Sequence record: OM401714.1
Length of the DNA stretch: 33,988 nucleotides
Strand: one strand, 5' to 3'
Of this stretch, positions 3,451-29,404 are shown in pieces; the stretch's first letter is position 1, and each line of letters begins with the position of its first letter. The translations under genes were made by a program, and so were the position numbers. The notes beneath the pieces are model-generated. The model had not been told where the DNA came from. It searched no databases and worked only from the letters and a program-made list of their open reading frames with translations.

Positions 3451-4074
3451 TCAGAATAAGGAGCCGAAACATTTTGCTTTAAATTCGCAATTTTTACATA
3501 AATAATTATTTGCTCCTGGTATAATTTTATAATCTTGTAGTTTCATAAATTCTTTAAATTTCTTAATCCAGTCAATTGTTTTTTTCATATATTCATCTAA
3601 TACTTTTTTATCTATTTGGAATTGTCTAACTTCTTTATTTATTCTATTTAAATATATGATATAAACATTATTAATTTTGTAATTTTGTTGTTGTAATAAA
3701 TAATAGTAAATTGAAACTTGATAAAGATGATATTCTTTGATATTAAAATAGTTACTTGTGATAGTTTTTAATTCTATTAAATCATTATTACAAATTAGAT
3801 CAACTCTTCCAGAAATTTTTATATTTTCAATTTCTCCTTTTACTTCAATTTCTGATTTACAATTTAATTTTTCTTCAAAATAATGTTCTACTTTTTCATG
3901 ATATTGTTCTCCTAGATCTAAAGTAATTTCATTTACAGCCTTCTCGAATTCAAATTTTCTACTAAAATAGCTTTTTCTAAAGCAAATTCCAATTTCGCTT
4001 GGAAAAATTGTATCTTCTGGATATTTCATTTTAAAACTTTGTTTTACAAATTCTTCATAATTTGTCATTTTCAA
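3451..4074 (-). CDS. cas4: Cas4-like (RecB-family, Fe-S) nuclease, SIRV2 ORF207-like
   Basis: N-terminal Cys (ICFRK), GRVDL...IELKT nuclease motif, HLYQVSIY, and C-terminal [10 protein letters not shown]. Overlaps the ATPase stop codon. Confidence 0.93.
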
Positions 4075-5378
4075 CCACCCAAATTACTAAATCTCATTAA
4101 GTTTATTATTCTATTACAAATTTCTTCATTTTGTACTTTTCCAATTTGTAAATCAATATCAAGAGCTTGCAATAAAATTTGAATATCAATACTTTGCTCT
4201 TTTCTTCTAGATTCTAAATTTTCACAATTTACATAATTATTAATACTATTTATCTTCTGTTGAATTAATTCAATTAAAGCTTTTAAAATTGAAGGATACA
4301 ATACTTGTGCATTTATAATTTTATCGTAAGTTTTCTTTATTGCTAATTGAATAATATGAATTCTATCTAAAATTGCAGATGTAAATATTTCATAATTTTG
4401 TAAATAATCTTCCACATCTGGATTTACTAATTTATTAATTGTATAGCTATAAGGATTTCCGGCGTAAATAATTGGAATACATTTTTGAATAGTTGCCGAT
4501 TTTGATTCTGTACCAGCCCCACGTGTCCAAATACAGTTTTCAATTCCAGTTGACAAAGTTGAATTTATAGTATTTAATTCTTTTGTTGAAAATCCATCTT
4601 TCCAATTTTGAATTTCATCAAAAATTAGGCCATTTGATAGAAAAACGGCTCCATACATATTATTTCTAGCATCATAGATTAAATTTGCATATGTAGGAGA
4701 TTCTGTATAATATCTAAAATTGAACACTTCTTGTAAAATCATAAAAGTTGTAGTTTTTCCAGTTCCTCTATTAGAAATTTCAATATAATTAATTTGTCTT
4801 TTTGTAATTGGAGATTTGAAAAGTGGAAATAATCTAGGGAGAAATAGAAATATATCATTTATTTCCATTTTTGAAGGATCATATCCAAAACTTTGAAGCA
4901 GAAGAGCATATGTTTGATATTGTTGATTTGCTAATTCAAATAATTCTTTTGCAATTTCATAATTATTTGGCGGTTCAATTGAATAAATATCGTAAATATG
5001 CCAACCTTCTATGCCTTTTCTAATTTTTACAAACATATAACTAGTTATTAAGTTATAGAAATCTTCAGGATTATCAGCTATAAAATGTGGATCAAATTCT
5101 CCAACAAATCCATTCTGAAATTTTGCTATTACAGATCCATCTTTTACTTTGAATTGTGTAATTTTTGAAATAAATTTAATTTCATTATTATATAATAAAT
5201 AAGACTGAAAATATTGTTGATCAATTCCACGTTTGTAAGCTTTTAAAATTTCAATTTTTTTACTTTCTTCAATTTGTTTTCCAGAGAGAATTATATTAAG
5301 GACTCTTTCTGTATCTCTTGGATTGTAAAAAAAAGAATGAGACTTTACTTTATCCAAAAACTGAAAATTACTACTCAT
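4071..5378 (-). CDS. P-loop ATPase / putative replicative helicase (SIRV2 ORF436-like)
   Basis: Walker [10 protein letters not shown], Walker B LIFDE, and SAILDRI arginine finger. Lies between SSB and Cas4. Confidence 0.9.
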
Positions 5379-5403
5379 AAAAAAAATGATAACTTATGAC
5401 GTT

Positions 5404-5805
5404 TTAAAATTCATCTTCAACATTCTTTTTCTGTGCTTTTTTCTCTTTCTTTTGTTCTTTTTCACTTTTCTCTTCTTCTTCTAATTCTAATTCTTCTTCT
5501 CTCGGAGTATTATTATTTTTTGGTGTGAATTTTACATATTCATTCAATAAGTCAGCATATTTAGATAGAAATTCAGAGATTAATTTTAAATCTTCTGCAT
5601 CATTTGCAGTTATTCCAAGTTGTTTTCGAAAATTATTTTGTGAATGTATAGTCATACTGTATCTTACTTTATTATCTTGTGGAATTGCATTTAGTTGTAC
5701 TACTATTCTTTTTAATCCCTTAATTTTTAAAATTCTTGAAGCTATTTTATTATCTTCTTTAGCTTGTTTTCCTAATTCATCTATTATTTCTTTTAATGAA
5801 GGCAC
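5404..5805 (-). CDS. Single-stranded DNA-binding protein (SIRV2 ORF131b-like)
   Basis: GTG start, ASRILKIKGLKRIVVQLNA core and a disordered acidic tail ending DEF. Conserved position before the ATPase. Confidence 0.85.
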   Translation of the reverse strand: MPSLKEIIDELGKQAKEDNKIASRILKIKGLKRIVVQLNAIPQDNKVRYSMTIHSQNNFRKQLGITANDAEDLKLISEFLSKYADLLNEYVKFTPKNNNTPREEELELEEEEKSEKEQKKEKKAQKKNVEDEF

Positions 5806-19057: not shown

Positions 19058-20758
19058 ATGAGTTTACCATATAAAGTACGTTTCAAATTACCTTTAGAAT
19101 TTTTAACTTTACAAGACTGGAATAACTTTGTACAAAATTTATTGTTTATAAATCAATATGGTTCGGCAAAATTATTACAATATTATCAAAATGGCAATTT
19201 TCAGAATTTAAATGATGTAATTGCAAAATATCTATATGTTTCAGCTTTAAAAATCGCTGGATATAATGTTTTACATAATTTATCTGCACCGTTAGCTTAT
19301 ACCTTTGGAGAAGGAAAACAACAACCGTTTGAAAGCATGGCAAATAAACCAATAATTCAATTGAAGTCTATAATATTTCCAATTCTAAATTTTCAGATAC
19401 AATTATCTAAAGTTAGTAAACAATTACAACTATTAATTCCTAAATTAACAAGTAAAATTATAACTCCTAATAATATTGCAGGTACTCAATTTATATTTTC
19501 TGGAACTGCAACAGTTGAGCAACTTATTGAAAATTATTTAGACCCATCATATTTACAAACATGGAGAGAAATAATAATACAAAATCTTGGAACTTCTGCA
19601 GTACAAATAAACAATTCTATCTATCTAATGCCTAAGAATTGTCTAAAAATAACTGCAAGTTCTCCATCAGAAATTCAATTAACTGCACAAACCCCAACTT
19701 TATTAAGTGAAGAAATTGAATTTACTGGAATTCCGATAACATTTTATACAATTACAATAACAAATAATCAACCAGATCCAACACCTTTACCATTTCAACA
19801 ATTGTTAAATTTGAATTTATCATCTATATTATCAAGTTCTAGTCAACTTTTGAATTTACAATTTTGCTTAGATGTGAATTGTAATACTCCATTATATGCA
19901 TGGATTGAAAGTTACAATTCGAATTTATCAAGTGTTTATATTTGGATAAATTTACCAACTTCAATTCCCGCAAATGGCTCATTAACTATCTATATGTTTA
20001 TCAGAAATTCAATACAATATCCTTACACTGGAATAAGACCAGATTTAACCACAACTTACGCACAATATGATAATGGAAAAAATGTATTTTTAATTTATTT
20101 TAACGGAAATGAACCATTATCTAATTTTAATAATCAAGGAAATTCATTAACTCAAATATCCACAACTGGGCCGTTAGGAAATACAATAAATGCAATTTAT
20201 ATAAGCGGTTATAATTCACATTTTGGATTTGTATATACTCCTAAATATATATCAAATCAACCAGTAATTGCAGAATCATCAGTAATAGATTTAGGAAATC
20301 AAGCCGGTGGATTAAATGCAGATAACGGATTTTCTTCTATAGTTGATAGTACTTCAATTGGTAATTTAAATGCTATAAGCGTAGATATGGGATATTCCGG
20401 TTCTTATTTTTCTAATGATTATTTTATAAGTGGAACTCAAACTTCTGATGTAAATCCTCAAGGATCCGCAGTATCACAATGGCTTTATGCATGGGTTGTA
20501 TATTCTGGATCATCAGCTAGTTCATGGTATGGATGTATAGCTCCTCAATTTTATAGTTCAACTGGCGGTTATTGTGGTACAGTTAACAATAATCCATTTT
20601 CTAGTTCTTCTCAATTATATTTAGGTATAATTGGTAGTGTAAATTCTAGTTATCAATGGCAAACCGCATGGAACTTTATGAGATTAAGAGCTTATCCACC
20701 AAATAATATCATGCCTTCAAATTCTCAACCACAAAAAACTATAATATTAATCACGTGA
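19058..20758 (+). CDS. Putative minor virion / receptor-binding protein with DUF2341-like domain, 566 aa
   Basis: The N-part resembles the 267-aa ORF. From aa ~229 it has ITITNN...LQF...PLYAWIE...YIWINLP..IPANGSLTIYM, then a beta-rich S/N/G region. Confidence 0.75.
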   Translation: MSLPYKVRFKLPLEFLTLQDWNNFVQNLLFINQYGSAKLLQYYQNGNFQNLNDVIAKYLYVSALKIAGYNVLHNLSAPLAYTFGEGKQQPFESMANKPIIQLKSIIFPILNFQIQLSKVSKQLQLLIPKLTSKIITPNNIAGTQFIFSGTATVEQLIENYLDPSYLQTWREIIIQNLGTSAVQINNSIYLMPKNCLKITASSPSEIQLTAQTPTLLSEEIEFTGIPITFYTITITNNQPDPTPLPFQQLLNLNLSSILSSSSQLLNLQFCLDVNCNTPLYAWIESYNSNLSSVYIWINLPTSIPANGSLTIYMFIRNSIQYPYTGIRPDLTTTYAQYDNGKNVFLIYFNGNEPLSNFNNQGNSLTQISTTGPLGNTINAIYISGYNSHFGFVYTPKYISNQPVIAESSVIDLGNQAGGLNADNGFSSIVDSTSIGNLNAISVDMGYSGSYFSNDYFISGTQTSDVNPQGSAVSQWLYAWVVYSGSSASSWYGCIAPQFYSSTGGYCGTVNNNPFSSSSQLYLGIIGSVNSSYQWQTAWNFMRLRAYPPNNIMPSNSQPQKTIILIT

Positions 20759-20765
20759 TGTAAAA

Positions 20766-22304
20766 ATGTCTTCAACTTACTGCGTTCAATTACCAGAAAA
20801 TCTTTTATTATTATCTATGACCACAGTAAATCCTATAAATTTTACATCTTTGCAATTTTCATTAAGCGTAAATTCGCTAGTTATTTTTCTATTTTCAAAA
20901 TATCCTTTTAATGCCGGTTATTATAATAATTTTTGTGTTAATGCTGATGAATTTGGATTTGCACAAGTTGGTCAAAATTTCAATATAGATTTATCAAATT
21001 ATCAAAATTATTATATGTTAATGTTAATTTATCCACAAGGAATTAGTTTAAAGAGTTTTAAAAGTTGCGTTCCGGCTCAAGGTTTAACTATGACTTTTCA
21101 GAATACAACAATTTCACCAATTGGAAGCGAAACTGTAATTAATAATTTTGATGGTCAAAAAGAAACTGGATTTTGTTTATGTTATGATGGTCAAAGTCAT
21201 GTAATAGGAATTCTATGTAATAATTCAAATTATGTTTCTGCTATTTCATTAGATAATTTAAATAATCAATTATTAATAATGACTTGTCAAGGATTTATTT
21301 ATCAAAATAATACAACTGTAGGATTTATAACACCAAGTACATGCGGTACTTTTGGTTCATATTTAACAGCAGAAATAACATTTATTGCAAATCAATCAGT
21401 TATAGATTTTTTACAAAATAATGGTATCTCTTATAATATTTTATCATCTACTTCATGTCAATCAACTTATAAATTACTTCCATGTACTTTACCATGCAAA
21501 TCATTTTATCAAATTACAAAATTATTATCTCCTCCAACTAAATATTCATTAATTTCCTCAAATTTGTGGAATGAAATTGTACAAGATTTATATCTAACTT
21601 ATAGCGTATTTAAATACATTAGATATTTAACACAATATGCATATTTAGATTATATATATCCTACAATTTTAGACTTTTATAATTTTTATGAGAACTTTCA
21701 ACCATATTCATTTGTTCCGTTATTGTATGCACAAAAAGGAATTCCATTAACTGTAAATGATTTTAACAAATTAATAGATGCAATTATAGAATTAGCAAAT
21801 GAAAATAATATAAAATTGCAAAAAGGACTTTCTTACGTTCAACGTGATCAAGTCGTAAAAGCTAAACAATTTGCAGATATAGTTTATGATGTTAATCAAT
21901 TTCTAACTTTCAATCAAAATCAATATTTTCTATTAGATTGTAATGGATCAATTTTCTCGAATTTATTAAATACACAAAATGCATTTCTAAATGTTATAAT
22001 TAACAATCTAGTAAATTCACTTAATATTCCTTCAAACGTTTATATTAAAAACTTATTAATATATACTTCAAATCAAACTATTTATAATTACGGTGCAATA
22101 GATAAATTAATAATTAATATTAATAACGGCGAAATTTATCTTAATGATAATTCATTTATAAATTATCTACTTATAACTGACAATAATAACAATATTTATA
22201 TAAATGATAATTCAGTAATAAATAATTTAATTTGTATTAGCAATACTGGAACTATAAATATCTCAGCAAATGCAATAATTAAAAATAATCAGTGTAATTT
22301 ATAA
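20766..22304 (+). CDS. Putative minor virion protein (SIRV2 ORF564-like), 512 aa
   Basis: Lies in the fibre operon. Has LWNEIVQDL / DFNKLIDAI motifs and C-terminal Asn/Ile beta-helix-like repeats. Confidence 0.75.
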   Translation: MSSTYCVQLPENLLLLSMTTVNPINFTSLQFSLSVNSLVIFLFSKYPFNAGYYNNFCVNADEFGFAQVGQNFNIDLSNYQNYYMLMLIYPQGISLKSFKSCVPAQGLTMTFQNTTISPIGSETVINNFDGQKETGFCLCYDGQSHVIGILCNNSNYVSAISLDNLNNQLLIMTCQGFIYQNNTTVGFITPSTCGTFGSYLTAEITFIANQSVIDFLQNNGISYNILSSTSCQSTYKLLPCTLPCKSFYQITKLLSPPTKYSLISSNLWNEIVQDLYLTYSVFKYIRYLTQYAYLDYIYPTILDFYNFYENFQPYSFVPLLYAQKGIPLTVNDFNKLIDAIIELANENNIKLQKGLSYVQRDQVVKAKQFADIVYDVNQFLTFNQNQYFLLDCNGSIFSNLLNTQNAFLNVIINNLVNSLNIPSNVYIKNLLIYTSNQTIYNYGAIDKLIININNGEIYLNDNSFINYLLITDNNNNIYINDNSVINNLICISNTGTINISANAIIKNNQCNL

Positions 22305-22781
22305 CTTACAAAATACAAACTCTTTATTATCATCAGTTATGAAAGTCAAAATTGTTCCATATAATTTTTTCAATAATTCAAATTTATTTTCTGTCCATTC
22401 ATGTATAGCTATACAATATTGCTTATATTTTTGTAATTGTGAAAAGTCTAAATTTTTTTCACAACCTTCACAATCCATCACGAAAATATCAGTATCTGGA
22501 TATTCATTACCTTTCCACTCTCCATGAACCTCAACTTTGTCACAAATCTGGAATTCTTTACATACTTTTTCTTTAAATCTCTTGTTTAATTTGTCGCTTT
22601 TTTCATATCCAATTATATGTTTTGCACCTTTTAACAAAAAATATAAAGCCGAACTTCCACAATCATTTCCAACTATTGTAATTGTTTTATTTTCAACTTG
22701 TAATTTACCATAAGCTAAATCAAACTCATGCCAATAACAACATTCTAATTTACAAAAATAATCTTTATAATTTATACTCAT
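22299..22781 (-). CDS. SAM-dependent methyltransferase (SIRV ORF158-like)
   Basis: TIVGNDCGSSALYF motif I, IIGYE motif II, and FVMDCEGCE (FkbM-like). Confidence 0.88.
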   Translation of the reverse strand: MSINYKDYFCKLECCYWHEFDLAYGKLQVENKTITIVGNDCGSSALYFLLKGAKHIIGYEKSDKLNKRFKEKVCKEFQICDKVEVHGEWKGNEYPDTDIFVMDCEGCEKNLDFSQLQKYKQYCIAIHEWTENKFELLKKLYGTILTFITDDNKEFVFCKL

Positions 22782-24018: not shown

Positions 24019-24624
24019 ATGAAAATCTTTACTTTTGTTGGATATACAAAACATCTTTCAGAATTGGATTTTGATTATGTTACAGTAGATAAAACATTTA
24101 ACGATTTAACTCCAGAATTAGAAGAGAAATATAAAGATAAAATTATCTGGAATGAAACAAATAGTAACATAAGATGGGTAAGAATAGCAAAACAATTACT
24201 AAAAATTCTAGAAATAGCAAAAGATTTAGATGATGATGTATTTGCAATAATTGACAGTGATCTAATTGTTCCAAAATTACGCGATATTGATCCACAAAAT
24301 AAAATTTTGACTTTATGTTATTGGCTATATTACGACTGGGCTAATGAAGTCAGACCATTCTGTTCTGGTACAAATTATATATTTAATAAAAAACATATCA
24401 CAATTTTAGAATCTGTAATTAATGTTTATTTAGAAAAAGAATATTATAAAGAATTTCCAATTGATATATTTCTACATGACCATATTTTACATATAAATGT
24501 TCTAAAACTTGGAACTATTCATTACGTAAAAACTCCAGAAGGAGAAAAGAAAATGGAATTTAAACTAGATGATATTTCACAATTATTTAAACATATTCCA
24601 GAATTTGTTTTAATTAGTTGGTGA
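24019..24624 (+). CDS. GT-A-fold glycosyltransferase, 201 aa
   Basis: FAIIDSDLIV DxD motif. Position before the GT-B gene is as in SIRVs. Confidence 0.8.
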   Translation: MKIFTFVGYTKHLSELDFDYVTVDKTFNDLTPELEEKYKDKIIWNETNSNIRWVRIAKQLLKILEIAKDLDDDVFAIIDSDLIVPKLRDIDPQNKILTLCYWLYYDWANEVRPFCSGTNYIFNKKHITILESVINVYLEKEYYKEFPIDIFLHDHILHINVLKLGTIHYVKTPEGEKKMEFKLDDISQLFKHIPEFVLISW

Positions 24625-24632
24625 GGACAAGA

Positions 24633-24731
24633 ATGAAATTCATTAATTCAGAATTAAGTCCGATCCAATCCAAGTTAAAAATTAAAGATATTAAAATGTC
24701 ATTTTCTAAACTTTGAATTAAGGACGTGGTG
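24633..24731 (+). repeat. 99-bp element, copy B
   Basis: 73/99 ungapped identity to the reverse complement of 22787-22885. Contains the perfect TTAATTC-A-GAATTAA. Confidence 0.85.
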
Positions 24732-24739
24732 ATACAAAT

Positions 24740-25804
24740 TTGACAAATATTATTTATTATGTTTACCCTCAACATCATGATGTCAGCTTCAAATTTGTTG
24801 CCACAGAACATATAAAAATGTTAAGAGAAAAATATACAGTTTACGAAATTCCCTCTTTATCTTTCTATCAATTTACTCCATTTAGATATCCAATTTCTAT
24901 AATTCATCCATTCTTTTATAGTATGTGGCACTGGGGAAAAATAGAATTTTCATTTTTTGAACAATATAGATCTAAAGTTTCTGCAATTATAGGAGTTGAA
25001 GTAGCTGATTCTGATAGAATAGCAGAGAAATTTATTGAATATGGCAATAATTACGCTGACAAAATAATAGTAAATTCTGAATGGTCAGTTAGAGCATTCA
25101 AAAATTCTGGATTAAAAATTCCAATTTATAAAGTTGTACATAATTTCAATTCTAGACTATTGGCAAAAGATAATGAATTAAAACTTGATGATCAAGTGAA
25201 ATATATTGAAAAAGTTAAAAACGAAAAGAAAATAAAGTTAATCTTCATTTCGCTTTGGCATAGTGATTTTAGAAAAGGAGCTGATTTATTTCACACTATA
25301 GCTAAAGAAATACAAAAAGAAAGAAATGATGTTTATTTCTTAGTTAAAAGTGGCGGGCCTAGGACAGATTTTCAAGATTTGAGAATGTTCAATTTCACTG
25401 GAAATACTGATTTTGATAATATAGTAAAGATGTATAGAATATCTGACTTGTATCTCCTAACTTCAAGAGGTGGAAGTTTTGAATTAAACGGTTTAGAAGC
25501 TTTTGTATCAAAAATTCCAGTTATTGCGACAAAAGGCGGGGCATGGGAAGAATATTTTCCATCTCAACTGAAAGATTTATTAGTTGACAGTTGTAGATTT
25601 CCAGATGTTCTTTGGAACAATCCAATTCATATTGGTCAAGGAGTAGAAATGTGCATAGATAAAGCTATAGATAAAATATTAGAAGTTCTAGATAAACTGG
25701 ATGAATATAAAGCGAAAATTGAGGAGAATTATAATTTCTGGTTAGAAAATTTCAGTTATAACGCAGTAAAAAAGCAATTATTTAACGCAATTCAAAAATC
25801 TTAA
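24740..25804 (+). CDS. GT-B glycosyltransferase (SIRV ORF356-like), 354 aa
   Basis: RKGADL and SRGGSFELNGLEAFVSKIPVIAT motifs. TTG start after GGTGA. Confidence 0.92.
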   Translation: MTNIIYYVYPQHHDVSFKFVATEHIKMLREKYTVYEIPSLSFYQFTPFRYPISIIHPFFYSMWHWGKIEFSFFEQYRSKVSAIIGVEVADSDRIAEKFIEYGNNYADKIIVNSEWSVRAFKNSGLKIPIYKVVHNFNSRLLAKDNELKLDDQVKYIEKVKNEKKIKLIFISLWHSDFRKGADLFHTIAKEIQKERNDVYFLVKSGGPRTDFQDLRMFNFTGNTDFDNIVKMYRISDLYLLTSRGGSFELNGLEAFVSKIPVIATKGGAWEEYFPSQLKDLLVDSCRFPDVLWNNPIHIGQGVEMCIDKAIDKILEVLDKLDEYKAKIEENYNFWLENFSYNAVKKQLFNAIQKS

Positions 25805-25830
25805 ATTGGTCATAATGTAGGAACTATGAT

Positions 25831-27021
25831 ATGGAATTTCAAAGAAAAAGTTCAGGTATAATAAAAAGTTTCAATTCTCTAGATATTTTTTCTATTAACT
25901 TATTGTACATGGGAATCTTAAGCGGTATAAGTTATCCATTATTTGTCTCTGAAATGATGAAAAATGTAAACTTATTATTTGCGATTCTAATAGGTTCTGC
26001 TTTTGGAATTCCATTACTTGTAATGTATTACGTATTAACTAAAAAAATTCCGTTAAATGGTGGAGATTATGCTTATATTCGTTCAACATTTTCGCCGAAA
26101 TTCTATACAATTTTCGGAATTTCGTTATGGTTAATTTATGTATTTTCAGCTCCAGTTTTATCAGATCTAGTTTTACTCAATTTCAATATTCCAACAATTG
26201 AGAAATTCTTTATTTCAGAATTATTATTTGCTATTGCTTTACTTAGCATAGTGAAAAAGTCAATTTACGCTTACATAGTTGATGGTTTGGCAATTTTACA
26301 AATAATTGTATCGTTAATCTTACCAATTTCAAGCTTCCATTTTGAATTTGAAAATTTCACTGTATCGAATACTTTACTTTCAGCTTTACTATTTGATTTA
26401 GCAATGTTTCTATTCTTGAATGCAATTAGTTATATAGCTGGTGAAACAAAGAATGTAAATAGAAGCATGAAAATAGGATATTTTGTAAGCTATTTAGTAG
26501 TTACTGTATTAGCAATATTAGACAGTTATTCAAATCTAAATATATTATTTATATTAATGCCAATTTGGTTCATGAGCTATATTTTTGTAACTTCTATGAT
26601 ACAAAGCAGATTAGTGCAAAATTTAGCATTTGATAAAATCTTACCCGAGAAATTCACAAAAATAACGCCTAACGCACTTTTATTAATCTTTACTGCTGAT
26701 ACAATTACAAATATTCTAGAAAATCTTCTAAACTTTTCAATTTCATTTGGGTTTGACGGTCTATTATTCATATTCTGGAATTTTATAGTTGTTAGTTTTG
26801 CATTTCTAAAGTTGACAAACAAAAAATTATTATTTTCAGTTGTACTAATTAGTTTAGCTTTACAAATTTTCCTATTCTTCTATTTAGGTATGCAAAATCA
26901 AATATTCTATAGTTTCGTAATTGAAGGTAACATACTATATACTATATTAAGAATATTGATAATGCCAATTTTAGGCGGAATTATTTACTTATTAAGGAGA
27001 AAAGTGATAAATGTTGAATAA
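25831..27021 (+). CDS. APC-superfamily (amino-acid permease-like) transporter, 396 aa
   Basis: About 11 hydrophobic segments with RKSSGIIK, PLNGGDYAYI and SYIAGETKN permease motifs. Confidence 0.85.
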   Translation: MEFQRKSSGIIKSFNSLDIFSINLLYMGILSGISYPLFVSEMMKNVNLLFAILIGSAFGIPLLVMYYVLTKKIPLNGGDYAYIRSTFSPKFYTIFGISLWLIYVFSAPVLSDLVLLNFNIPTIEKFFISELLFAIALLSIVKKSIYAYIVDGLAILQIIVSLILPISSFHFEFENFTVSNTLLSALLFDLAMFLFLNAISYIAGETKNVNRSMKIGYFVSYLVVTVLAILDSYSNLNILFILMPIWFMSYIFVTSMIQSRLVQNLAFDKILPEKFTKITPNALLLIFTADTITNILENLLNFSISFGFDGLLFIFWNFIVVSFAFLKLTNKKLLFSVVLISLALQIFLFFYLGMQNQIFYSFVIEGNILYTILRILIMPILGGIIYLLRRKVINVE

Positions 27022-27023
27022 AG

Positions 27024-27959
27024 ATGAAGTTGATTTTTGGTATTTCTGGTTCAAAAAGTTATCTTTTTCAAACTAATTTTCCAATTTTAGCAAATCAATT
27101 AAAACTAAAACGAATAAATTGGAAAAATGAAACTTGGATAGATAGCGGTGGATTTCAGATAATTATGCATAATCTAAAAATTTCTGTAAATGATGTCTTA
27201 CAAAAATATAAAAGTGTTAATGCTTACGCTTTTTTTAGTCTAGATATCCCTAGTATTTTTTCTCCAATTGATAAAAGAAATTTTCAATACTTTGAATATC
27301 TATATACCAAAATTGAATGGATAGAAAAAATTATACCGGTTTTACATCTTTATCCAATTCAAGATATAGATTTAGCTATAGATTTTTATAAACAATATTC
27401 TTATTATTTCGCAATTGGCGGAATTATGACTTCTAGCAAAATGAAAGTTTTAATTTATACATTTCCATGGATTTATTATATAAAAAGAAAAGTTCCATAT
27501 CTTCATGTTTTAGGCATGTCATCTCCATATTTTTTGCAAATTTTTAATAATATGCAAAGCATGGATACTGCAATTTGCTCAACAATTTCGGCATTTAAAG
27601 AAATAATTTGGTTTGATGGATCTAGAAAATATGTCGGAAATATGAAAACAAAAAGAGAGAGATATAAAATAAGTAAAGAAGAAACAGAAGAACTCTTTGA
27701 ATTTTTAGATAAACATAATTTCTCATTTGAATATAACTTAAACGATAATAAAATTTTAGAAATGATAAATGTATACATGTTACTATATAATAATTGGAAA
27801 ATTAAGAATAAGTATACTGAATATGCAAATAAATTAAGAAAAATGGGAATAGATAGTTTGACAACTGAATTAATTAGAAATTATAAAATTGCAAATGAAA
27901 TATTGAAAGAAAAAAAGAATAAGAAGAAAAAAGAAGATGAATTAGACCTTGAGATATAA
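27024..27959 (+). CDS. tRNA-guanine transglycosylase (TGT/DpdA)-like protein, 311 aa
   Basis: WIDSGGFQI, SLDIP, AIGG, LHVLG and SMDT motifs. No recognisable PUA domain. Confidence 0.85.
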   Translation: MKLIFGISGSKSYLFQTNFPILANQLKLKRINWKNETWIDSGGFQIIMHNLKISVNDVLQKYKSVNAYAFFSLDIPSIFSPIDKRNFQYFEYLYTKIEWIEKIIPVLHLYPIQDIDLAIDFYKQYSYYFAIGGIMTSSKMKVLIYTFPWIYYIKRKVPYLHVLGMSSPYFLQIFNNMQSMDTAICSTISAFKEIIWFDGSRKYVGNMKTKRERYKISKEETEELFEFLDKHNFSFEYNLNDNKILEMINVYMLLYNNWKIKNKYTEYANKLRKMGIDSLTTELIRNYKIANEILKEKKNKKKKEDELDLEI

Positions 27960-27976
27960 AAATTCATATTTTCACA

Positions 27977-28519
27977 TCACTCATCTTCTTCAGCTTGCAT
28001 TATAATATCAATAGTCTCTTTTATTTTATCCTTAAATTTCTCTATTATTTCATTAGGACTTAACAATTGATAAACTTCATTACTTAGAACTTCTGAAATT
28101 GTATTTACATTTACTTCTCCTAAATCTAGAAAAATACATATATCTAAGTAATAATAGCCTTCAAGTATATTATCAATATAAACTTCTGCAATCCTCTTTT
28201 TTTCATTTTCTGGAAAATCTAACTTTACAGTAACTTCTTTTGTCTCATCTTTGGATTTATCAACTTTTTTACTTAGCAGAATCTTGAATTCGGCATTTTT
28301 CATGAATGCATTAAATATTTTTTCTTCTTTATTTTTCTCAAAATATTTTATTTTCCAACCATCTTTTTCTATATTTTCACGGATCATCTTGATTATTGTT
28401 TCAACTAGAGAATCTCGAAAATTCGTATAACAACTTTCACTAATGTTATCCTCTCTTAGACTTTCTTCAATATTCTCACTTAGTTCAAATTCATCTAAAT
28501 CCCTTAAAATCAAACTCAT
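27977..28519 (-). CDS. Acidic 180-aa hypothetical protein, paralogue of 1685-2206
   Basis: Shares sequence blocks with the 173-aa ORF. Class-2 promoter and GGTGA RBS upstream. Confidence 0.85.
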   Translation of the reverse strand: MSLILRDLDEFELSENIEESLREDNISESCYTNFRDSLVETIIKMIRENIEKDGWKIKYFEKNKEEKIFNAFMKNAEFKILLSKKVDKSKDETKEVTVKLDFPENEKKRIAEVYIDNILEGYYYLDICIFLDLGEVNVNTISEVLSNEVYQLLSPNEIIEKFKDKIKETIDIIMQAEEDE

Positions 28520-28693: not shown

Positions 28694-29404
28694 ATGAGAA
28701 AACTATATGCAAATGTAAAACAAATTAGAACTTATACATCTATACTGCCAAATGCAAAATTATTATGGCAAAATGATAAATTAGCGTTATATTATACATA
28801 TGACTCTACACAAGGACAAGTAAATTGGATTATGCAAAATAATACAAATTCTTCTATACTTGTATCACTTTTAAGAGGTGCCGAATTAAATATAAACGGT
28901 CAAATTTATACAATACCAGACTACTTATTTGGAAATGCTTTTGCTGAGGTTTACTTTGCAAACAATTTGTCTAATTTCATAACTGACTTGAACAATATTC
29001 CGCTTTATTCATTAGCAATTGTAAATAATAATAATGGAGTTAGAACTATAGCTTTTGTCTTCCAAATACCACCAAATTCAGTAATTATAGCACCAGAATA
29101 TGGTTTTACTAATTTACAAAGTATAGATGGACAACTATTAGAAGTAACTCCAATAAATCAAAATCTATTTGGAATAATTTACGACTTTTCTGAAATTATT
29201 GAGTATGAAAATCAGACTGGAATTAACGTGAATTATCCACCAGATCCATATATAGTTCAAAGCTATCAATTTCTAGTTGATAATCTAGGACAAATCATGA
29301 CTCAAAGATTAATATTAGAAATACCAGAAAGCGATATAAATACAGTAAAATCCTTGGTTTCGGATTTTCAAAAAGTAATAGATAAATTAAAGAAGATATT
29401 TTAA
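28694..29404 (+). CDS. 236-aa beta-rich hypothetical protein
   Basis: Long ORF with a TTTTAATGTCATA promoter. Asn-rich, with LFGNAFAEVYF and PEYGF motifs. Confidence 0.8.
   Translation: MRKLYANVKQIRTYTSILPNAKLLWQNDKLALYYTYDSTQGQVNWIMQNNTNSSILVSLLRGAELNINGQIYTIPDYLFGNAFAEVYFANNLSNFITDLNNIPLYSLAIVNNNNGVRTIAFVFQIPPNSVIIAPEYGFTNLQSIDGQLLEVTPINQNLFGIIYDFSEIIEYENQTGINVNYPPDPYIVQSYQFLVDNLGQIMTQRLILEIPESDINTVKSLVSDFQKVIDKLKKIF

Follow-up and report, generated by a model that had tools for sequence, protein, structure and literature searches.

A candidate DpdA1-type guanine transglycosylase next to a probable APC-family permease in the rudivirus SIRV V65

[quoted passage not shown] Between positions 24019 and 27959 it carries four genes on the plus strand (Table 1), and these raise the question of whether they form a single DNA modification system and what the last of them does. 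This stretch of 3.9 kb agrees with the record over its whole length (100% identity, identical coordinates). Three of the four are annotated in the record, as a putative glycosyl transferase, a putative amino-acid transporter and a putative tRNA ribosyl transferase. The original prediction, made from the sequence, read the run as two glycosyltransferases, a transporter and a protein resembling tRNA-guanine transglycosylase (TGT) that together might import a 7-deazaguanine and install it in DNA. The gene order that it described is correct, with the TGT-like gene starting 2 nt after the permease stop. The region is made up of two independent modules, a glycosyltransferase block (24019-25804) and a permease-TGT pair (25831-27959). 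The explanation that we favour as a whole, with a probability of roughly 60%, combines these two modules with a TGT-like protein that would be a DNA guanine transglycosylase of the DpdA1 type using a base made by the host.

The TGT-like protein was not recognized by direct searches. The Pfam TGT model, NCBIfam and PADLOC gave no match and neither did a single-sequence phmmer search against the Protein Data Bank (PDB), and therefore profiles were required. When 1.8 billion cluster representatives were searched with a profile, 1,062 relatives were recovered at E<=0.001, and the best 150 of these 1,062 all have 440 residues or fewer. When 60 members were combined into a profile, it matched archaeosine TGT (arcTGT) at 8e-38, DpdA at 4.5e-17 and the T. 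maritima TGT at 3e-16. The AlphaFold (AF2) model, obtained from 16 homologues with a pLDDT of 84.9, shows a predicted TIM-barrel fold of the TGT type. Compared with one representative per PDB cluster, it gave Z scores of 21.2 with P. horikoshii arcTGT (263 residues), 18.3 with bacterial TGT, 17.7 with the DNA preQ0 insertase DpdA (7UI4), 16.5 with QTRT2 and 16.1 with Cap10, and unrelated TIM barrels scored 13.2 at most. Lists of PDB structures were filled by entries of the Z. mobilis TGT, and a search of viral structures in BFVD did not separate DpdA from TGT.

All the motifs first noticed in this protein are found in its translation, namely WIDSGGFQ (residues 38-45), SLDIPS (72-77), AIGGIM (130-135), LHVLGM (160-165) and QSMDTA (178-183). 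Residues D40, D74 and D181 do not vary in any of the 60 family representatives, and 58 of these 60 carry H108; H161, G164 and N249 are also invariant in the family. In HMMER alignments the three aspartates coincide with Asp95, Asp130 and Asp256 of the DpdA of S. Montevideo, which serve as general acid/base, base-binding residue and nucleophile, respectively (PMC10164549). H108 aligns with His181 of DpdA, at a position where arcTGT (Gln169) and the bacterial TGT of T. maritima both carry a glutamine.

The structural Zn motif CxCxxC..H (CxCx2Cx22H) is absent from the V65 protein, which has a single cysteine and an isoleucine at the position of the histidine ligand. This site is conserved in TGTs and in bacterial DpdA, and most of the more distant members of the family carry it, whereas neither the rudiviral proteins nor the 30 or so representatives nearest to them (E below about 1e-30) have it. 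The validated DpdAs of phage 9g and of STSV2 also have no such motif. Moreover the protein, 311 residues long, aligns with residues 34-358 of the 577-residue arcTGT chain and with no other part of it; the C1, C2 and PUA domains are therefore absent, as had been predicted for the PUA domain.

The V65 protein is homologous to these two validated DpdAs. With that of STSV2, a Sulfolobus virus of the Bicaudaviridae, it shares 35% identity over 277 residues (BLASTP, E 1e-57) and the same Zn-less architecture with the histidine, and the DNA of STSV2 contains dCDG, at a level of 0.04% of G (Cui et al. 2023, PMC10516641). The rudiviral profile aligned with the DpdA of phage 9g by hhalign (probability 90.8%, E 1.2e-6) over 202 columns with 18% similarity, and the alignment extends through the C-terminal helical part that stands in for the Zn subdomain. 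The DpdA1 proteins of Enterobacteria phage 9g and Escherichia phage CAjan resemble that of V65 in having about 300 residues, a TGT barrel, the two catalytic aspartates as well as the one that binds the base, a histidine in place of the glutamine, no Zn motif and a C-terminal helical region. The differences are the low similarity, the absence of preQ0 or G+ synthesis genes from the V65 genome, and the nature of V65 itself, a rod-shaped adnavirus of an archaeal host.

The sequence and the model support a DpdA-like protein rather than a tRNA enzyme, and the original prediction stands in so far as the active-site histidine, the lack of RNA-binding domains, the homology to 9g DpdA and the identity to STSV2 DpdA agree with it. 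The comparison that it proposed with DpdA, arcTGT and bacterial TGT, by profile and by structure, turned out differently, the catalytic domain of arcTGT and not bacterial DpdA being the closest. By these measures we class the V65 protein as a putative DpdA1-type enzyme with a backbone closest to that of the catalytic domain of arcTGT and no close kinship to bacterial DpdA. With the bacterial DpdA (7UI4), which belongs to the Dpd restriction-modification system, it has in common the three aspartates and the equivalent of His181, but it does not have the DpdA-specific insertions, the Zn site or the DpdB/DpdC partners. PADLOC Dpd models matched none of the four V65 proteins, and the rest of the genome gave no relevant Pfam match.

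The same features bear on the possibility that the enzyme acts on RNA, be it host tRNA, viral tRNA or another RNA, in the way that arcTGT acts at G15, and thereby tunes translation during infection. The existing annotations read tRNA ribosyltransferase, and arcTGT (1IQ8/1J2B), which has DSGxFQ, LDIP and FDS-type motifs in common with the V65 protein, offers the best structural and profile match. Nevertheless the V65 protein has none of the C1, C2 and PUA domains of arcTGT, carries the histidine of DpdA where arcTGT has Gln169, and groups with the DpdAs of 9g and STSV2. In addition the host already owns an arcTGT, and the annotation of the window contains no tRNA genes, no tRNA scan having been made. 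We consider an RNA target unlikely.

In the mechanism that we favour for the putative DpdA1-type enzyme, the permease and TGT-like genes would be co-transcribed as an accessory pair. D40 would act as the general acid/base, D181 would be the nucleophile through which enzyme and DNA become covalently joined in an intermediate, and a 7-deazaguanine (preQ0 or G+) would take the place of guanine in the double-stranded viral DNA. This base would be supplied by the FolE/QueD/QueE/Gat-QueC pathway of the host, the substitution would probably affect a low fraction of G, and the modified DNA might be shielded against host nucleases. As predicted, the virus has no preQ0-synthesis genes of its own, since the Pfam models of FolE, QueC, QueD, QueE, QueF, DUF5591 (the ArcS core) and YhhQ had no match (E<=0.01) among the other 37 open reading frames (ORFs) of at least 75 residues. 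S. islandicus on the other hand carries FolE, QueD, QueE, Gat-QueC and arcTGT, which is the whole G+ pathway (PMC6884629).

The prediction of a DpdA in rudiviruses was already published in 2019, when Hutinet et al. classed the TGT-like proteins of SIRV1, 2, 4, 5, 7, 10 and 11 and of SRV as DpdA singletons without synthesis genes (PMC6884629). What is added here is the placement of the glycosyltransferases outside the module, the reading of the permease link as partial synteny, the description of the enzyme as a Zn-less offshoot with the histidine near the arcTGT catalytic domain, and the finding that outside the rudiviruses the usual partner of the TGT is the ArcS core domain. When SIRV2 was passaged in CRISPR-null hosts it spontaneously lost the TGT (gp13) and the permease (gp14) along with gp10-gp12, and in these hosts the mutants with the deletion grew as wild type does (PMC6315595). 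Such a loss without cost fits an accessory function tied to defence or niche. If a 7-deazaguanine is indeed present in rudiviral DNA, DpdA-type DNA modification reaches the realm Adnaviria and genomes packaged in the A form, and the SIRV2 mutant without gp10-gp14 makes this a genetically tractable archaeal system.

Several points weigh against a DpdA acting on viral DNA. Both the backbone and the profile are nearest to arcTGT (Z 21.2; E 8e-38 as compared with 4.5e-17 for DpdA), and the catalytic domain of arcTGT is still able to modify tRNA when the PUA domain is missing. The Zn site that bacterial DpdA conserves is not found in the V65 protein. The modification level in STSV2 is 0.04% of G (PMC10516641), and among the DpdA singletons that have been tested, two in number, phage Orion was unmodified and phage 7-11 carried the modification at 0.02% of G (PMC6884629). 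Finally, the literature that we searched gave no report of 7-deazaguanine in the DNA of any rudivirus, nor of a test for it.

The surroundings of the nearest non-rudiviral relatives give a further indication of the chemistry. In these a gene with DUF5591, the catalytic core of ArcS, adjoins the TGT gene or lies two genes away, as it does in STSV, and this association ties the family to 7-deazaguanine chemistry. The STSV DpdA is paired with ArcS2 (DUF5591) near a thymidylate synthase and a DNA methyltransferase and has no permease, whereas V65 has a permease and no ArcS. A permease is also missing from a related viral contig 8.9 kb long, and a search of IMG/VR with the TGT alignment recovered SIRV and STSV contigs and no others.

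We also observed that several metagenomic archaeal contigs (L012, 369-8951; L046, 2283-10987; also L013 and L047) share a conserved cluster that includes a compact TGT. It consists of NurA, an ATPase with DUF87 (HerA-like), a large protein without Pfam match (about 1,413 residues), DUF5591 and the TGT, with an integrase nearby. This cluster may represent an archaeal Dpd-like island for 7-deazaguanine modification or restriction.

The C-terminus of the V65 TGT-like protein (window 27885-27959) is formed by a long helix that contains a Lys-rich stretch and then an acidic tip. The SIRVs keep this tail, whereas the SBRV1-like, STSV and metagenomic relatives have none. Its function may be to bind nucleic acids.

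Judged by its sequence, the gene in front of the TGT encodes a conserved protein that probably belongs to the APC family, in agreement with the type assigned to it at the outset. The AA_permease_2 match (E 3.2e-5, 23.5 bits) lies under the gathering cut-off of 27, and the protein also matched TIGR00908 at 3.8e-5 and phrog_8289 at 6e-199. A profile of seven viral permeases matched GkApcT at 3.5e-7, CAT4 at 6e-5 and AdiC at 5e-4, and neither the GGDY-Y motif nor the glutamate of transmembrane segment 6 (E205) varies. The AlphaFold model, built from nine sequences, is of low confidence (pLDDT 37.6). Word searches for relatives were filled by near-identical viral proteins, with no cellular homologues among the matches listed.

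The APC relatives of this permease carry amino acids, polyamines and organocations, and we know of no APC-family member that carries 7-deazapurines. The Pfam and NCBIfam matches of the permease were all to APC models, with none to YhhQ or QueT/QrtT. The uptake role suggested for the V65 permease is the one that the known 7-deazapurine importers, YhhQ/COG1738 and ECF QueT/QrtT, have, and to these the permease shows no similarity. Some phages do carry YhhQ, and Hutinet et al. (2019) raised the uptake of exogenous precursors for viruses that have DpdA and no synthesis genes (PMC6884629).

The distribution of the two genes was followed by comparing the V65 proteins, with BLASTP, to every ORF in the genomes of seven other rudiviruses. 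In SIRV1, 2 and 3 the permease and the TGT are adjacent and on the same strand (at 6.4-8.6 kb in SIRV2, about 20 kb from its glycosyltransferase block). They are adjacent yet convergent in SRV. Adjacency extends to three genera, and every TGT-positive rudivirus compared has the permease. In 21 of 21 usarudivirus-like contigs of IMG/VR the junction of 2 nt is identical. Such a spacer implies co-transcription and possibly coupled translation. However, in SBRV1 the two genes are 4.6 kb apart. The hoswirudiviruses SSRV1 and ARV2 have the permease and no TGT, even when all their ORFs were searched with the profile, and conversely STSV1 and STSV2 have the TGT without the permease; ARV1 and SMRV1 have neither. 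When presence and absence were counted by hand with one row per genus, the Fisher test gave p about 0.14. The link between permease and TGT is a partial co-occurrence among closely related viruses that is broken in both directions.

These observations decide how much weight can be given to a narrower form of the import proposal, limited to the gene pair, in which the APC permease would bring in an exogenous 7-deazaguanine and the DpdA-like enzyme would insert it into viral DNA. The strictly kept junction, the adjacency in the SIRVs and in SRV, the presence of the permease in all TGT-positive rudiviruses and the suggestion of precursor uptake quoted above are in its favour. It is opposed by the permease-only hoswirudiviruses, by the TGTs of STSV and of the metagenomic relatives that have no permease, by the separation in SBRV1, by the p value per genus, by a host that itself makes preQ0 and G+, and by the amino-acid and cation transporters to which the permease is related. 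What remains for the importer role is partial synteny, and we find this reading improbable. Equally doubtful is a salvage module in which the permease would import the 7-deazaguanine base or carry the displaced guanine away. If this is true, no transporter of 7-deazapurines has been described before it in the APC family, nor in archaea or their viruses. Uptake of amino acids or organocations as nutrients is at least as likely a function as the import of 7-deazapurines.

Directly downstream of the permease, at the position of the TGT in SIRVs, the two hoswirudiviruses encode a conserved protein about 207 residues long (SSRV1 ORF28-207, 20000-20623; ARV2, 21879-22502) that has no similarity to the TGT profile. 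With regard to SRV, Mayo-Munoz et al. (2018) call gp13-gp14 of SIRV2 absent from this virus, which in fact encodes both (3487-5608), the convergent ORF419 and ORF294 having 30% and 35% identity, respectively.

Permeases 71% identical to that of V65, which is the level of SIRV1, 2 and 3, were found in NZ_JBHSPB010000050.1 (Streptomyces gamaensis) and in NZ_BAAAUT010000071.1 (Planomonospora alba, a contig of 31,951 bp). These contigs are SIRV-like and almost certainly represent rudivirus contamination of the assemblies. Such contamination would explain the name 'MULTISPECIES ... [Bacteria]' that NCBI gives to a SIRV3-like TGT protein.

A TGT fold may also serve acceptors other than nucleic acids. 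Cap10 is described as a TGT-family enzyme that joins a 7-deazapurine to protein, and the V65 model matches it with a Z of 16.1. The profile match to Cap10 is however marginal (5.6e-5 over about 45 residues), the Pfam scan of the ORFs found no CBASS partner genes in the genome, and the catalytic residues are invariant across the family, which also speaks against a non-catalytic relic. Another acceptor or a relic is thus very improbable, and the putative DpdA1-type DNA enzyme remains the reading that we prefer.

Table 1. Features of the four-gene run in the V65 window
Feature	Coordinates	Strand	Basis
Core rudiviral protein of about 200 residues, SIRV2 ORF176 homologue, candidate small GT-A-like glycosyltransferase	24019..24624	+	phrog_5113
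GT4 (GT-B) glycosyltransferase, SIRV2 ORF356 homologue, core rudiviral gene	24740..25804	+	Glyco_trans_1_4, phrog_2170
Probable APC-family permease, SIRV2 gp14/ORF399 homologue	25831..27021	+	AA_permease_2, phrog_8289, TIGR00908
Compact guanine transglycosylase of predicted TGT fold, putative phage DpdA1 type, SIRV2 gp13/ORF310 homologue	27024..27959	+	fold, residues
2-nt spacer, permease stop to TGT start	27022..27023	+	sequence read (TAA ends 27021; ATG begins 27024)

The two upstream genes had both been taken for glycosyltransferases. The second is a solid GT4 enzyme, with Glyco_trans_1_4 at 2.8e-10 (41.1 bits, cut-off 27), Glycos_transf_1 at 36.9 bits (cut-off 26.4) and phrog_2170 at 4e-111, and it has 56-77% identity to its homologues in all seven other rudivirus lineages, including ARV1 and SMRV1. 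The first is a candidate. Its homologues (43-68% identity) are likewise found in 7 of 7 other lineages and it has an invariant D79-S80-D81 (DSD) motif, but its PHROG is of unknown function, no PDB match was obtained by sequence, and a GT-A fold is hinted at just weakly, by the match of a single homologue to Glycos_transf_2 (E 0.0043) and by Atlas neighbours at 0.90-0.94 with few common features. It may be a small GT-A-like glycosyltransferase.

A methyltransferase, ORF267, the protein of about 200 residues and the GT4 are present in every rudivirus compared, ARV1 and SMRV1 included. Both glycosyltransferase genes are thus core genes that occur also where the TGT and the permease are lacking, and they are therefore no part of the TGT system. 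Across the 21 usarudivirus-like contigs the spacing between GT4 and permease takes values between about 30 and about 1080 nt, so that these genes happen to lie upstream of the pair. That the four genes form one glyco-DNA pathway, the glycosyltransferases decorating the inserted base, is contradicted by the gene distribution and is the least credible proposal, since their closeness on one strand in V65 is outweighed by the presence of both glycosyltransferases in viruses without the pair, by their distance from it in SIRV2 and by the indels at the GT4-permease junction, and since to our knowledge no glycosylated 7-deazaguanine has been described.

Capsid proteins are glycosylated in many archaeal viruses (PMC4456609), and an ordinary role is therefore available for these genes. 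The block of methyltransferase, ORF267, the protein of about 200 residues and GT4 most likely adds sugars to proteins of the virion or the host.

Among the usarudiviruses the GT4-permease spacer forms a hot spot for indels. It measures 26 nt in V65 (25805-25830) and 450-1080 nt with small ORFs in relatives, examples of the longer form being found in contigs L021 (8362-8807) and L037 (6607-7685).

The genes downstream of the pair, at 27977-28519 (minus strand) and 28694-29404 (plus strand), fall into PHROGs without an assigned function. None of the seven other rudivirus genomes contains a homologue of ORF180, and ORF236 is found in SBRV1 and SMRV1 as well.

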